DNA of 64,000 nt, taken from NCBI GenBank assembly GCA_001179505.1, contig CDMY01000300.1:62001-126000 (forward strand), given 5' to 3'. The notes beneath the pieces were generated by a model. That model had not been told where the DNA came from. It worked only from the letters and a program-made list of their open reading frames with translations, and did no database searches. The position numbers and the translations under genes were made by a program. Of the stretch, positions 50,786 through 56,646 are shown piece by piece; position 1 is the stretch's first letter; each line of letters begins with the position of its first letter. Origin of the DNA: Vitrella brassicaformis CCMP3155. Taxonomy: Eukaryota > Protista > Chromerida.

Positions 50786-52953
50786 TCACCAGGAGTACCC
50801 CAGCTCCTCTTTCCGCTTCAGGTACATCGCAAACCTGACCGATGGATGGACCCAACATACACACAATCAGCGGTGTAGATATTCCAGCGTCAGGCAATGT
50901 CCAGTTGATTTCATCAGTCTTCTTAAGATACCTGGCTTGAGCATACGCGAGGAAATCAAAGGACATGTCGGACGGCTGTGGGTCGTCCATGAGACACTCG
51001 CCCGCCCTCCCGTCTTCAAGAGCAACAGGACTGCACGATGTATCCCCAAACAGACAGAAGGCCCTCCCCACCCCCCACAGGCCCCACAACAGATTCGACG
51101 CTAAGCAAAATCCCTCCACCTGACACAACAGACACACATATACACAGATACTGGCACATGCAGTGCGAGTGCCATTCACCTGTTGAAGGAAGGGGTCGAT
51201 CATGCTGATGTCCTCGGGCAGGATTGGGCTGCCGAGCAGCTCAGACAGGTAGACGCTGGCGAAGAGGCGGCGCCGCTTGATGCATGGGTATGCCTCAGTG
51301 GTGACACTAAAGCAGGGCGGCTGTGTGACGCAGTAGTCAATTGTCGCCTCGGTGAATATGTTGGCAATGTCGAAGGCAGCATAGTTGTAATCCGAATACT
51401 CGAAATCAATCAAGCGGATGCCCTCGCTCGTCTGCACCAAGGAAGCGGCATATATGGGAAAGCTAAGGCGCCTGTGTGTGTCTGCCCATGCTGTGTATCG
51501 ACTCACCTTCATGATGTTGTTCTCTTGGCAGTCGTTGTGGCAGAAGACAATCGCGCGGGCGGCCAGCATGGCCCTCTCGGTGAGTGAGCTGGCCTCTGGC
51601 GGCTCGTCTGCCTGCTGGATGACGTCTGAGTTGAGAAATGACTCCACCTCTGACGCTATCTGAGGCAGATTCAGGGCCTGACGAAGCACAACGACAAGGA
51701 GCACTTCCACGTTTGGGACGGCGGCACCAGCTTCGAATGTCGCTTACCGCCAGTTGTTGCTGCTGGGCTTCAGAGGGGAAGCTGGCCTCCAGACTCAGCT
51801 GCAGACACAAAATGGGAAGGAACACACAAACATGCACTGCACTCGCCATTGCCTTCTCATTCGTGTGCTATGTATGTCGCCCCACCTTCATCCACTGTCT
51901 GAGCTTGACCGGCAGACACGGCCGCCTCACAATGCCGCACACATCACTGGCACCAAGAGCCAGACGATGCAGGCGGGCAATCTGATACACAAGGCACAAG
52001 AAGCAGCGCCTTATGGGTCGTCAGCGTGATGTCATGTCTGCAGTGTTACTTACTTGTGTGGCGACGCCCGCCAGCTCAGGTGGACACTGGAGTTCCTGTA
52101 CGAGTAGAGGTCTGCCCCACACCCACTCCTCTATCCGACCACCCTGCAGGACACACCAACCACACCGACACAATACAGCCAACAAGCCCTCCAGCCATCC
52201 CATCCCATCATTCTCTGTCTTGTCTGTCCCCTCCCCACCTGGAAGTTGGCGATCATTTTGGGCGCCATGTTCCTCTGCCCGAGTGCCCGGAACACGTCCA
52301 GCTCGAAGCGCGAGTCATAGAACTTGGAGTTGTCCCCATAGACGCGGAACAGCACTTGCTGATGCACCAGTGGGCTGGATGCATCTCTCGGCACACTAGG
52401 GCTGGTGGTGGTGCCGGTGACGGCCGAAAAAGACTCGGACGACTTGCACCGTCTGCAGGATGGCTTTGGTGTCCCGACGGCCACGCGGAAGAGCTGGTTG
52501 GTCAGGCCGGCCTCTATCTGCTCTATCTCTATGTGGTGAGGCGCGATGGCCTCCTGACAAACAAGACAGACAACAAAACACGAACAAATTGAACACGAAA
52601 CGGTAGAGACCAGCCCGTCAGCGTCTGCATCTTTGTGTGTCGATTGTGCTCACCCATCCCGGGACGTTGAGGATGCATATGACGCGTATGGTGGAGGGCT
52701 TCGATAGCATCCTGATCCGCCTCCTCGTGCGGGGCGATATGTCATCGTCTGGCAGGCTGTGGTGTGGAGAATGATGCTGCTGGTCTTCTCCGATGAGGCT
52801 GATGACGAGCTCCTCTTCGACAGACAGCCCTTGGCCCGCCTCCTCCGCCTCAGTGGTGACAGACGAAGCGTCAAAGGGGAGCGGCTGAAGGAAGAGCTTC
52901 CTGCGGCTGGTGTCAGCTGCTTCAGCCTCATGGGACGACAGAAACGTGTCCAT
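50786..52953 (-). CDS. Choline/ethanolamine kinase
   Basis: IEAGLTNQLFRV, VLFRVYG, GGRIEEW, Brenner motif VFCHNDCQENNI, IRLIDFEYSDYNYAAFDIAN, ASNLLWGLWG, FDFLAYAQAR; ends ELGYSW*. Confidence 0.95.
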
Positions 52954-53151
52954 GGTGGAGGGAGAGGAAGAGGCCCCTTTTCCCCTTCTTCCAGGGAACT
53001 AAGCTCGCAGTGAGAGGCTAGGGCGCTACTTAAAACGCGCGATCGGCCTGCGGATCTCTCCCTTTCCCTCCCCTCCTCTGCCGTGGCTACATTCGTCTCG
53101 CAGCGGGTGATTTTGTTGTTGATCTTGCGTCAAATTGAAAGCAGTCTCACA
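52954..53151. promoter_or_regulatory. Putative bidirectional promoter choline kinase / Nudix-RWD-ART gene
   Basis: 198 bp between divergent ATGs; contains CTAAGCTCGC at 52999-53008. Confidence 0.5.
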
Positions 53152-56076
53152 ATGGCAGTGAGTCTCTCGAGCGGTGAGCTCATTGACATTGTGGATCATG
53201 ACAATAGCGTCATCAGCACCGCCACGAGAAGGGAGATGAGATGTGACAATCTTCTGCACAGGTCATTTCATGAGAGACCGAACAGACTCTGCCTGCCGTC
53301 TTCCCGTCGTGTGCCGTCCTCCCTTGCTGCTGCAGGTCGACTGCGTGTGTTGTGTTGGATACGACGCTGAAGAGCCTCTTCATCCACAAGCGGACGAGCG
53401 TAAAAGACTATTTTCCCTCTCACTTTGACGTGAGCTTTGGCGGTGTGGTTGCTGCCGGGGAGTCGTATGAAGACAATGTCGTCCGAGAGATCAAGTAGGG
53501 ATGAGGCTTTCACGGATCAAGGTGGAACACAGTGAGTAGGTGACACTCGCAGGGACTGTGTTTCTCTGTCTATCTGCCTGTCTGTGTCCTTTGTGTCTGT
53601 CGTGTCTGAGTAGGGAGGAGGCCGGCATTGAAGGCGCCAAGCTGCACCAGCTGACGACAGTCTATCACGAGGACGACAGGGCGAGGGTGTTCACTTGTAT
53701 CTTCCTCACCGTCTTTGCCGGCGACGTGACCGACCTCATTGCCCAGCCTGAGGAGGTCGAGTACATCGAGAAGGTGGCTGTCGAGGAGGTGCAGAGGCGG
53801 ATCGACAGCGGCGTCCCCTTTACTGGCGATGCGAAACGAGTGTTCGCAACCGTTCGCCAGTTCCTACAGAGCGCTGAAGCAATCGAGGTGCTCGAGGGAC
53901 TGGCTGAAGCAGACGTCGGTAATCCTGTTGTCGATGAGCTAGACGACTGGGAGGACGGGCTGACAGCCGCCATAGAGCAGGTGGAGCGCATCGTCACACC
54001 CTGTAATGAAGAGCTGGAGAGCACCAGGGCGGAGGAGATCTTGGCTCTCAAGGACATCTATGGTGACGATTTTGTGGCGCTGTCGAATGACTTGATCTTC
54101 ATCAAACTGCGGCCGCTGGCCCTCACACACGAGCACGGCGACGAGCACGGCGTGATAGCGTCGCTGATGATTCTGCTGACGTCCAAGTACCCCTTCCGCT
54201 GTCCAGTATTCGAAATCGACTCCGACAAGCTCACTCTCGCGCAGGCCGATTCGCTGTGGGGGCTGCTCGAGAGGGAGGCAGGGCGGCTGATTGGAGGCGT
54301 CATGCTGCACGAGCTGGTGTCTGTCGCCACTCACTTCATCAGCGAGGTGATTGAGGAGGAGAGGCGAAGGGCAGAGGAAGCTGACCGCAAACAAAAGCAA
54401 GAGGCGGACGAAGCGGTACGTATGTACGCAAAGGACAAACGGACGGACGGACGGAGAAAAGGAATGTGCGTTGTCCAGATCATCCACTATGATCACTCAC
54501 TGCTCATGTGTGTGCGGTGCGTCTTGGCGCTGCAGGCTGTCTTCGAGGGCAGCGGTCACGAGCACATCAACCTGTCTCCTGCCCACGCCACTCTTCCGTC
54601 AGCTCCATCGATCTTCAAGTACTCACCTCAGCGGTATGTGTGCCTGTCTACCGTGCTCAAGCAGCTCCCACCACACCAAAAGGTGGTTCATGTGGAGACC
54701 ATACTCAGAGATGACCACGCCAGACGGGTAGATAGGGTAGACAGAGAAATGAAATGAAGGCCGGGCCGCACAGCTGTGTGTGTGTTTGGTTCCTGTCCGC
54801 CTGCATTGTCCTCTGTGTGTATGAATAATGAATGAGTGCAGTTTGAACGTGAGCAACAACGGCTTGAGGAGAAGTTTAGTGGCCAGCCGGTGGGGCACTG
54901 GACGTACCACCCCACAAAGGTATATTGTGCCTTCCATGGTACGAGCTACGGGCGGGTCAGGAGCATCGTCAGGAGGGGCTTGCTGGTGCCAGGTCGGTAT
55001 GCTCACTCGTGTGTGCGACGATTAAGGACACCAACCTGCGGCCAAACGACACGTGCGTCCTGTGCTGTGGTCCGCTTGTGCAGGCAGCGCCAATGACGTG
55101 ACCCACAAGACCGACGAAGGCTTTTACGGGCGTGGTGCGCATCCACCTGTGGGGCGGGGGCATTTGTCTCACTCACTCACCTGTTGGCGGTGAATCCTAT
55201 CATGCTTTTGTACGTGTGTGGTCTGCCCAGGTATATATCTGTCGCCGAGCGCCTCGGTGTCGTTCGGCTACTGCGGTGCTGAGGGCCGTCTGTTAGTGTG
55301 TGCGGTGCTGCTTGGGCGTCCATACCGGTGTCACCACACGATTCTGGGAGGCACCAAGGTAGAGGGTTTTGACACCCACATGTCAGCCAATGAACAAGAA
55401 TGGATCTTCTTCACTCCCGATACAGTAAGGCAGGCAGGAAGGCAGTCAGTCGGTCAGTGAGTGGGTCTCTATGTATGCTGGTGTGAGTTCAGGTGCTGCC
55501 GGTGTATGTCATTCGTGTGTGTGACGGTATGGACCGAGCCGTCCCATCCTATGCGCCCAAGCCGCCCCCACTGGCTGCCCTCCTCAATGATGGCATCACA
55601 GGGGTAGACTCGCTGCCCACCAAGGGAAAAGGTACGTGCAATGCGTGACCACCAACTCACTCCTAGCACAATGACACCTGTCTAGTGGTTCCCGTTACAG
55701 ATCCTGGCGCACGCAAGACGGCCCAAGAGCGGCTCCTGGCTCGAGCCAGGAAGGTACGAATGTCAGCTGAGCTGCAGGGGGGTCTCTCCTTCATGTTTCT
55801 GTTTTGTGTGTGTGTGTGTGTTTGACATCCAGTTCCTGCCGTACGGTTACGGGCCAGGTGGAGAGAAAATGATTGTTGAGGCAGCGGGGGAGATCGATGA
55901 CGATGAGTACATATCGATGAACATGCAATTGAGAAAAGGCCCCACTCACCGTGTCGTGTGTTGTCTCTATCAGGGAAGATTATTGGCCCGACCGAGAAAT
56001 GAATGGCCCTCACCTTGGTGATGAGTTTCAGGCTGCACGTGAGCAGTCTGGTGGAGCGGGGAGCTCAGGGGAGTAA
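53152..56076 (+). CDS. Nudix hydrolase (YfcD-like) + RWD + PARP-like ADP-ribosyltransferase fusion protein
   Basis: ELIDIVDHDNSVISTATRREMRCDNLLHR|STACVV...HKRTSVKDYFPSHFDVSFGGVVAAGESYEDNVVREIK|EEAGI (full Nudix box); RWD EEILALKDIYGDD...TSKYPFRCP...LIGGVMLHELV; ART AFHGTS, FYGRG|IYLSP, LLVCAVLLG, NEQEWIF, VLPVYVI; tail FLPYGYGP...DDDE|EDYW...DEFQAAR...*. Confidence 0.85.
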
Positions 56077-56646
56077 TTGCTATGCGTCAGCTGGGGTGTG
56101 GTGGTCGGTGGGGAGTCTGCTGTACTGCGAGATATATACAACTTGGTGTGCCCTGCCTGACCTGAGCACTTCTTGTTAATGCATTCAATGCATGATGAAT
56201 GTGTCGGTGTGCCTCGGGATGCACATGTCCACCGAACGTGCACCGACACGACACACACAGCATGCATGATGGATGCAACCAACACACCTCTCTCCTAGCT
56301 TAGCTTAGCTTAGTGTACCATTATTTACACCACACCCTCCAGCCAGACAGGCAGACCCGCACCCACCCGCCCTCACTCACCCACCCCACAGATATAAAGC
56401 CAGCCCCCTCAATTGATGCACAAACAAACAGACGTCATGTCATTCAAACGCATCACCAATTGCAGAGAGTACGCACGCATGAACGAACGAACGAGTCATG
56501 GCCAGTCGGTATGGAGCAGCCACCCGTCCATTCATCCATACATGCGCAGCGCCACTTACGACACGTGCATCTACAAAAAAGGCATGTAAAACGACGGAGA
56601 CCTGTCTATGCCCTCCCTCCCTCCCTCCCTCCCCGCCCGGCGATAC

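Follow-up and report, generated by a model that had tools for sequence, protein, structure and literature searches.

Enzymes that both attach and remove ADP-ribose from within one chain are already known, PARP14 being a writer and an eraser at once (PMC10499325, PMC10470015), and a single-chain writer/eraser PARP is therefore not new. PARP-type transferases have also been found together with the RWD domain. Human PARP6 and PARP8, in which the RWD is split (PMC10450202), and their RWD-bearing homologue in Reticulomyxa filosa (PMC4245714) combine this E2-related domain with a mono-ADP-ribosyltransferase-type PARP domain and carry no DNA-binding modules (PMC10450202, PMC4245714). Members of PARP clade 6 lack the Glu of the catalytic triad (PMC2964712). 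On the Nudix side, the closest described proteins are YfcD of E. coli (2FKB) and DR_0079 of D. radiodurans (1Q27/2O5F). DR_0079 is a pyrimidine nucleotide diphosphatase that prefers cytidine nucleotides, and the function of YfcD is listed as undetermined (PMC5389931). Some single-domain Nudix enzymes degrade protein-conjugated ADP-ribose, but purified E. coli YfcD hydrolyzed neither the mono- nor the poly-ADP-ribose of MARylated or PARylated PARP1, which its authors explained by a domain-swapped dimer that buries the terminal ribose (PMC4680915).

The gene analyzed here lies within a window of 64,000 nucleotides (the whole stretch of DNA that was analyzed, from the alga Vitrella brassicaformis CCMP3155) and encodes a Nudix domain, an RWD domain, and a PARP-type ADP-ribosyltransferase (ART) domain. 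Like PARP14 and the other macro-PARPs, the Vitrella protein holds a transferase and an ADP-ribose-processing type of hydrolase domain on one polypeptide. However, PARP14 uses a macrodomain as its hydrolase, which takes off the ADP-ribose as a whole, whereas the second enzyme of Vitrella is a Nudix pyrophosphatase of a type that failed on protein-linked ADP-ribose. In PARP6/8 a long insertion interrupts the RWD and a C4 zinc finger stands before it, while the RWD of Vitrella is contiguous. No Nudix domain has been reported in PARP clade 6. The pairing of RWD and PARP was already known (PARP6/8, Reticulomyxa), and the Nudix domain is what Vitrella adds to it.

Gene structure and transcription

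53152-56076, + strand: whole coding sequence, 11 exons, 675 aa, stop TAA at 56076
53152-53261, 53336-53494, 53614-54415, 54536-54727, 54842-54992, 55084-55134, 55231-55424, 55493-55631, 55701-55753, 55833-55906, 55974-56076, + strand: exons
53262-53335, 53495-53613, 54416-54535, 54728-54841, 54993-55083, 55135-55230, 55425-55492, 55632-55700, 55754-55832, 55907-55973, + strand: introns
53048-56400, + strand: transcribed region covered by spliced contigs, with 5' ends at 53048-53109 and a 3' UTR that extends past 56400
53262-53298, + strand: first 37 nt of intron 1, a fragment of a repeat dispersed in the genome, outside the protein

An earlier note, made from the sequence alone, had proposed that GT-AG splicing joins the three domains in one frame and had called for transcripts covering the gene from 53152 to 56076. 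Both points held up. All ten introns have GT..AG borders, the reading frame stays open across them (675 codons), and one spliced contig from each of the runs X1, X7, and X8 (2209, 2610, and 2589 nt; three studies) spans the whole gene, starting at 53048 to 53109 and ending at 56153 or beyond 56400 (at ca. 56615 in X7 and X8, judged by record length). Nine contig joints are listed, each in agreement with a predicted intron. The tenth intron (55754-55832) is hidden behind a repeat mask, and the record lengths are compatible with it, the 129 nt between 55629 and 55974 being 2 more than exons 9 and 10 taken together. These end-to-end contigs place Nudix, RWD, and ART on one mRNA. An N-terminal extension upstream was ruled out, since the ATG at 53152 is the only one from 53040 to the coding sequence. 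Rfam searches of 52900-56400 and of four copies of the intron-1 repeat gave nothing credible.

Assembled contigs are no proof of single molecules spanning the gene, and read-through or the assembly itself might have fused adjacent genes. Such an artefact is extremely unlikely, given that the identical spliced form was found in three assemblies from three studies, that the frame is held over ten introns, and that the Nudix-RWD junction contains no stop, intergenic sequence, or second start site. This junction lies inside exon 3, so that splicing is unable to part the two domains. No transmembrane segment was found in the 675-aa protein and no hydrophobic segment lies outside the Nudix core, which also rules out a PARP16-like tail anchor. 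The gene is real, expressed, and encodes a soluble protein of 675 aa.

The Nudix domain

53164-53845, + strand: complete YfcD/DR_0079-type Nudix domain (aa 5-177, exons 1-3), N-terminal beta region included
53442-53629, + strand: Nudix box GVVAAGESYEDNVVREIKEEAGI (aa 73-95), split by intron 53495-53613

The Nudix box, already described in the earlier note as complete and split by an intron, matches GX5EX7REUXEEXGU exactly in a regex search, including the REx2EE metal ligands. Exon 2 alone matched Pfam PF00293 with 20.3 bits (E 5.7e-4), and the YfcD profile NF011922 was matched collinearly by exon 1 (profile positions 8-38, 28.4 bits), exon 2 (43-89, 34.3 bits), and exon 3 (92-162, 22.4 bits). 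The sum of ca. 85 bits, obtained by exon-wise scoring and not from a contiguous protein, is below the equivalog cut-off of 152. The resemblance to YfcD that the earlier note had pointed out for the N-terminus corresponds to 34.5% identity over 177 aa with the E. coli protein, the one bacterial sequence used in this comparison, and the PDB matches of the domain were 1q27 (DR_0079) and 2fkb (YfcD). Similarity to both proteins is full length, with the canonical box and the N-terminal beta region in common. The latter, the basis of the domain-swapped dimer of YfcD, corresponds to profile positions 8-38. By these sequence criteria the domain is a member of the YfcD-like subfamily and not a YfcD equivalog. 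Dunn and coworkers reportedly described, in 1999, a conserved proline ca. 16 residues past the Nudix box of (NudF-type) ADP-ribose pyrophosphatases. In the Vitrella protein, the stretch from aa 96 to 134, downstream of the box, is free of proline.

While YfcD and DR_0079 are stand-alone bacterial proteins, the Vitrella domain is fused and its nearest relatives are eukaryotic. The best of them is a stand-alone protein of the apicomplexan Cardiosporidium (P0002, 42.5% identity), whose gene has unrelated neighbors and intron positions different from those of the Vitrella gene, a difference that says nothing about orthology either way. An origin from a bacterial-type Nudix gene, as suggested earlier, is thus acceptable as a family label, but a recent capture from bacteria is not indicated by these eukaryotic relatives. 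Only one YfcD-type locus, the fusion gene, was found in the V. brassicaformis genome.

The RWD domain and its linkers

53846-54025, + strand: helical linker before the RWD, equal to the N-terminal extension of stand-alone RWD-PARP proteins (alignment with those of Cyanophora, P0006, and Cantina, P0001)
54026-54331, + strand: contiguous RWD domain (Pfam PF05773)
54185-54211, + strand: YPxxxP motif of the RWD, KYPFRCPVF
54332-54643, + strand: linker after the RWD, charged and coiled (EEERRRAEEADRKQKQEADEA), followed by a stretch of low conservation; intron 3 lies within it

An RWD domain, a fold of the alpha-beta4-alpha type, had been expected at ca. 54020-54350, in the same exon as the end of the Nudix domain, and was located there by Pfam (48.8 bits, E 8.9e-13, cut-off 22.8 bits), AlphaFold2 (AF2; pLDDT 89.4), and Foldseek. 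The best structural match of the model was the RWD of GCN2 (7e2m, E 7.7e-8, TMt 0.74), and RWDD1 was also matched (2ebm, E 4.6e-6). Residues Y282-P283...P287 are invariant in a 22-row alignment, and the linker before the domain was modeled with helices at model residues 2-23 and 27-48. The likeness of the RWD to GCN2 and RWDD1 suggests that the protein may be tied to ubiquitin or to translation surveillance.

The ADP-ribosyltransferase domain and C-terminal tail

54644-55522, + strand: PARP-type ADP-ribosyltransferase domain (ca. aa 394-563, exons 4-8)
54935-54937, + strand: His453 of the H-Y-E triad, AFHGT
55236-55238, + strand: Tyr491 of the triad, GRGIYLS, just past intron 6
55398-55400, + strand: Glu545 of the triad, NEQEWIFF
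55701-55906, + strand: C-terminal tail, ERLLARARK-FLPYGYGP-...-acidic run, common to the Cyanophora protein (26-28 bits)

All three triad residues claimed from the first reading were located (H453, Y491, and E545), together with the nicotinamide-site Ser and Tyr (S497 and Y502). As judged by alignment, every alignable residue of the NAD+ site (H-G-T, GxGIY, S, Y, E) is retained. Exons 5 and 7 singly gave collinear matches to Pfam PF00644 of 12.3 and 12.4 bits (cut-off 26.7), and the fusion locus was not among the 16 matches of a six-frame scan of the genome with this profile, while the proteins of Cantina and Cyanophora reached 54.1 bits (1.9e-14) and 32.2 bits (9.5e-8), respectively. The ART of Vitrella matched that of Cyanophora with 84 bits. 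When a family profile that included Vitrella exons 5 and 7 was compared with the PDB, the top matches were PARP4 (2.1e-8) and ZAP (3e-7), followed by PARP1, TNKS1, and PARP10 (ca. 1e-4); PARP16 did not appear in the top 60. Aligned with PARP4, the family profile has its H, GxGIY, and "efvvf" columns over the matching motifs, with "efvvf" falling on EFVVY. Clear PARP matches came from the family profile only, as the ART of Cyanophora or Cantina alone gave weak ones and exon 7 singly only chance matches to tryptophan hydroxylase. For the Cyanophora ART (P0006:262-470, 4-row alignment), AF2 gave a model with a pLDDT of 38.3, which was unusable. A MAFFT alignment that took in every short exon fragment put exons 4 and 8 in the wrong place and was discarded. 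In a list of language-model neighbors, an ARTD15_N cluster came no higher than rank 14.

An ART-only paralogue on the Vitrella contig C428 also has H-Y-E, indicating that the ART is a movable module. Unlike in clade 6, the triad Glu is kept in the Vitrella protein, in this paralogue, and in the Cyanophora protein. The zinc-finger motif of clade 6, CX2CX9-19CX4C (PMC4245714), was absent from the Vitrella protein in a regex search (11 Cys, no CX2C pair).

Relatives and uniqueness of the architecture

The closest RWD-ART relatives have the same parts in the same order. The protein of Cyanophora paradoxa (EukProt EP00741_P019127, 571 aa) consists of a helical extension, RWD, linker, and PARP-type ART, is collinear with Vitrella aa 199-650 (151 bits), and shares the H-Y-E triad and the ARARKxLPYGxGP tail. 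That of Cantina marsupialis (EP01029_P025082, 600 aa) is likewise collinear but carries N at the position of the catalytic E. Both proteins lack a Nudix domain, their N-termini starting ca. 30 to 60 residues before the RWD. In the V. brassicaformis genome, the fusion gene is the only locus with RWD and PARP.

The earlier note knew of no description of the full Nudix-RWD-PARP architecture, and we likewise found none in the literature or in protein searches, the fusion being seen in one species only. When 1.84 billion representatives were searched exhaustively, no further protein spanned the junction between Nudix and RWD, and an ESM Atlas feature search with exon 3 (best score 0.78) contained no Nudix+RWD cluster. 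Exon 7 had no relatives in metagenome contigs, nor had protein P0011 in genome contigs. Word-index protein searches with the 405-aa ORF at 53540-54754 and with the Cyanophora and Cantina proteins returned nothing or the query itself, which is weak evidence, as the index is coarse and the libraries lack the Vitrella protein. We read the gene, from these comparisons, as a probable lineage-specific head-to-tail fusion of two complete proteins. The parts joined are the lineage's single YfcD/DR_0079-type Nudix and a member of a small protist RWD-ART family with a conserved LPYGxGP tail.

Proposed function and alternative readings

The reading that we favor, with a probability of roughly 55%, is that the ART would ADP-ribosylate targets recruited by the RWD while the Nudix domain would clear a free nucleoside-diphosphate compound nearby, probably not the protein mark. 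Intact motifs suggest that both enzymatic domains are catalytic. The ART would take NAD+ to modify its targets, which the GCN2/RWDD1-like RWD would bring in by docking on a partner, e.g., an E2 or ribosome-bound GCN1. A free compound close to the ART would be the most likely substrate of the Nudix domain, either ADP-ribose released as NAD+ is turned over or an NDP or NTP, pyrimidine or otherwise, and ADP-ribosylation would become coupled to the local clearance of nucleotide or ADP-ribose. Clearance of ADP-ribose in particular is a guess, and the absence of the proline that ADP-ribose pyrophosphatases carry after the box counts against it. That the domains are coupled at all is inferred, since the fusion alone is no proof and conservation is silent, no fused orthologue having been found.

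The earlier note had gone further and suggested a possible self-contained ADP-ribose writer and eraser. In such a protein, Nudix would cleave the pyrophosphate of the ADP-ribose that the ART has just placed on protein or RNA, a cleavage of which NUDT16 and RppH are capable, and the mark would be removed or converted into phosphoribose within one polypeptide. The intact catalytic motifs of both domains in one chain, the single-domain Nudix enzymes that do degrade protein-conjugated ADP-ribose (PMC4680915), and the precedent of PARP14 speak for it. However, the inactivity of E. coli YfcD on MARylated and PARylated PARP1 (PMC4680915) counts against erasure of a protein mark, all the more as the dimer-forming N-terminal region is present in Vitrella, and so does the preference for cytidine nucleotides of DR_0079 (PMC5389931), which scores best among the solved relatives. 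We consider this reading improbable, and its eraser half is not supported. A more specific version, in which the RWD would dock on GCN1/stalled ribosomes or an E2 and the ADP-ribose placed on a target protein or RNA would at once become a phosphoribosyl stub, so that Nudix acts on the product of its own ART, appears to us a long shot.

It is unlikely, if less so, that the two genes merged without functional coupling, leaving a housekeeping Nudix to ride on a signaling ART and work independently. The restriction of the fusion to one species and the stand-alone apicomplexan Nudix homologue with its unrelated neighbors fit such a history, but the only YfcD-type gene of the genome is locked into the fusion through a shared exon with all its motifs kept. 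The NUDT9-homology domain that gates TRPM2 is a precedent for Nudix as an ADP-ribose-binding regulatory module, and the N-terminal position of the Vitrella domain, directly before the helical extension that leads into the RWD, would suit a sensor whose binding of ADP-ribose or another nucleotide gates the ART allosterically. Nevertheless, a canonical box with its metal ligands favors catalysis over pure binding and makes a sensor very unlikely.

Significance

The gene puts a pyrophosphatase on the list of accessory domains known in fusion with PARP-type transferases. Should the chain "write and convert," it would make a modification that ordinary erasers miss, and it would be the first PARP-family enzyme in which an RWD and a pyrophosphatase accompany an H-Y-E ART. 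The comparison also delimits a small family of RWD-ART proteins with members in Vitrella, Cyanophora, and Cantina. The first two of these keep the catalytic Glu, unlike PARP6/8 of animals (PMC2964712), and this retention bears on whether the link between RWD and PARP is older than the loss of that Glu. For the YfcD-type enzymes, the fusion offers a testable hint that the substrate may be something tied to the turnover of NAD+ or ADP-ribose, in an organism close to the apicomplexan parasites.

Gene model and transcript

Vitrella brassicaformis is a photosynthetic chromerid related to Apicomplexa. In the assembly of strain CCMP3155 (72,700,666 bases in 1064 contigs; PMC4501334), three-frame translation of window positions 52800-56400 gave a gene model with 11 exons, ten GT..AG introns, and 675 open codons. 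As the earlier note had proposed, the Nudix box is split by the intron at 53495-53613 and the RWD domain follows in the exon where the Nudix domain ends, with the boundary inside exon 3. The ADP-ribosyltransferase (ART) motifs that it listed were likewise found in place: AFHGT at 54935, FYGRGIY, interrupted after FYGRG by intron 6, and NEQEW. The gene and its neighbors are as follows.

52618-52953, minus strand: divergent ORF, starting ~200 nt upstream of the ATG at 53152
53152-56076, plus strand: Nudix-RWD-ART gene, ATG to TAA
56606-58669, minus strand: convergent ORF of 687 aa, its C-terminus bearing a RING-like Cys/His cluster

Eight sequencing runs contain the stretch, three of them with 0.57 of its sampled words. 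When four runs were compared with the window, single contigs of 2209, 2610, and 2589 nt were recovered from X1, X7, and X8 (RNA runs from three studies), with nine of the ten modeled introns removed and GT..AG ends. The tenth intron lay under the repeat mask in this comparison and is taken to be spliced as modeled, since the record has 129 letters from 55629 to 55974, which is 2 more than the summed length of exons 9 and 10. Because the Nudix-RWD boundary falls within exon 3, the three domains share one spliced mRNA and frame. Contigs start at 53048-53109, and no second ATG occurs upstream of 53152 within the 5' stretch that they cover. The short distance to the divergent ORF implies a shared promoter region. 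At the other side, the end of the convergent ORF (~56606) is also the endpoint of the 3' UTR contigs, and a short TAGCT-type microsatellite (tagcttagcttagcttag) lies within the 3' UTR at 56291-56310.

A YfcD-type Nudix domain

Exons 1 to 3 matched the NCBIfam YfcD model NF011922 in profile order (profile 8-38, 28.4 bits; 43-89, 34.3 bits; and 92-162, 22.4 bits), although the sum of these singly scored exons is far below the equivalog cut-off of 152. Among solved structures, exon 2 matched DR_0079 (1q27, E 7.8e-5) and YfcD (2fkb, E 2.3e-3). The spliced domain has 34.5% identity to E. coli YfcD (from NC_000913) over 177 residues, and motif search found a fully canonical Nudix box. It is 42.5% identical to a stand-alone 204-aa protein of the apicomplexan Cardiosporidium cionae, named "nucleoside diphosphate hydrolase," with which it shares a distinctive EEV-YIEKV...QRRIDSG stretch; that gene is unfused, between an aminotransferase gene and an S1-domain gene. 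No other YfcD-like locus was found in the Vitrella genome.

The RWD-ART portion

The RWD domain was clear by Pfam (48.8 bits, E 8.9e-13). An AF2 model of the region (window 53927-54415), built from a 22-row alignment of matches, reached a pLDDT of 89.4, and its top Foldseek match was the human GCN2 RWD (7e2m, E 7.7e-8, TMt 0.74), followed by RWDD1, RNF25, and the yeast GCN2 GI domain. Apart from RWD-PARP proteins, the nearest sequence relatives combine RWD with DFRP_C (RWDD1/Gir2 type) or with a kinase (GCN2 type). RWDs of the GCN2 and RWDD1/Gir2 types bind GCN1 on ribosomes, which may serve as a lead to a docking partner of the Vitrella RWD, not as a finding.

The best RWD matches of exon 3 were proteins of Cantina marsupialis (P0001, 600 aa) and Cyanophora paradoxa (P0006, 571 aa), both with a Pfam PARP domain alongside (1.9e-14 and 9.5e-8, respectively). 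From aa 199 to ~650 the Vitrella protein is collinear with the whole of the Cyanophora protein (151 bits, 84 of them from the ART portion), including a C-terminal ARARKxLPYGxGP-acidic tail. Language-model features of the Cyanophora ART pointed to PARP clusters (score 0.96). The ART domain of the window is divergent, as PF00644 scores its exons at only ~12 bits apiece and a six-frame genome scan with the PARP profile did not pick up the locus; its assignment therefore rests on the family profile and transitive homology. That profile, including window exons 5 and 7, matched the solved catalytic domains of PARP4 (2.1e-8) and ZAP (3e-7), and those of PARP1, PARP12, tankyrase-1, and PARP10 at ~1e-4, with the columns H, GxGIY, and efvvf aligning over the PARP4 motifs. 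Motif search showed that H453, Y491, S497, Y502, and E545 are retained.

In PARP6 and PARP8 a C4 zinc finger precedes an RWD that is split (PMC10450202), an RWD is appended to a PARP6/8 homologue of Reticulomyxa (PMC4245714), and members of PARP clade 6 lack the triad glutamate (PMC2964712). In contrast, the Vitrella RWD is contiguous, the glutamate is kept, and a pattern search of the spliced protein found no CX2CX9-19CX4C motif; PARP16 was also absent among the best solved-structure matches of the family profile. For these reasons we did not place the Vitrella ART in clade 6. No transmembrane segment was found in the 675 aa.

Other PARP-like loci and the intron 1 repeat

The same six-frame scan found at least ten further PARP-like loci, none of which coincided with another RWD locus genome-wide.

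Contigs C262, C336, C465, C409, C415, C466, C117, C378, C428, and C494: further PARP-profile loci
G000:C428:~71600-72950 (L006:5674-6952), minus strand: ART-only paralogue, 57.6% identity over the Y-to-E exon

The C428 locus is a close paralogue that likewise has the H-Y-E triad (AFHGTS, GRGIYLSP, EREWVLF). Its N-terminus is short, and neither an RWD nor a Nudix domain occurs up to the divergent gene of an RRM protein.

A 37-nt repeat piece (window 53262-53298), whose first two bases are the GT of intron 1, matches a dispersed repeat except for a single additional A at 53281. This repeat has at least 87 near-identical copies, distributed over both genome strands. Four copies were sampled (L001 to L004); their conserved block spans 100-330 nt, reaches to varying distances on the 5' side, and shares its 3' end, resembling 5'-truncated LINE/SINE tails. 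The repeat is transcribed, RNA-run contigs with it being 5-10 times deeper than the Nudix-RWD-ART gene, and had no match in Rfam.

Novelty and interpretation

No description of a Nudix-RWD-PARP or Nudix-PARP architecture was found in the literature searched. An exhaustive phmmer search of 1.84 billion representatives with exon 3 gave 26 matches, none covering both Nudix and RWD (five proteins, three of them from EukProt, matched the Nudix half), and language-model feature and word-index protein searches also gave no protein across the junction. As the libraries lack Vitrella's own protein and their Chromera coverage is unconfirmed, absence of the fusion elsewhere is not proven. Pairwise precedents exist, namely RWD with PARP and, as in PARP14, a transferase joined to a hydrolase.

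The gene is a head-to-tail fusion of two complete proteins, a YfcD-type Nudix protein and an RWD-ART protein. Such a fusion could act as a writer and eraser of ADP-ribose, but purified EcYfcD left protein-conjugated mono- or poly-ADP-ribose undegraded (PMC4680915), and the best-studied Nudix relatives argue against trimming of the protein-bound form; DR_0079 is classed as a pyrimidine nucleotide diphosphatase, whereas YfcD is listed with no determined function (PMC5389931). Alternatively, the Nudix and RWD-ART parts may be fused without being coupled, or the Nudix part may be a sensor domain. The best-studied Nudix relatives favor a free nucleotide or an ADP-ribose-type compound as the candidate Nudix substrate. 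Since both catalytic sites are apparently intact, the protein is predicted to combine an active Nudix pyrophosphatase with an active ADP-ribosyltransferase that would be targeted via its RWD domain.
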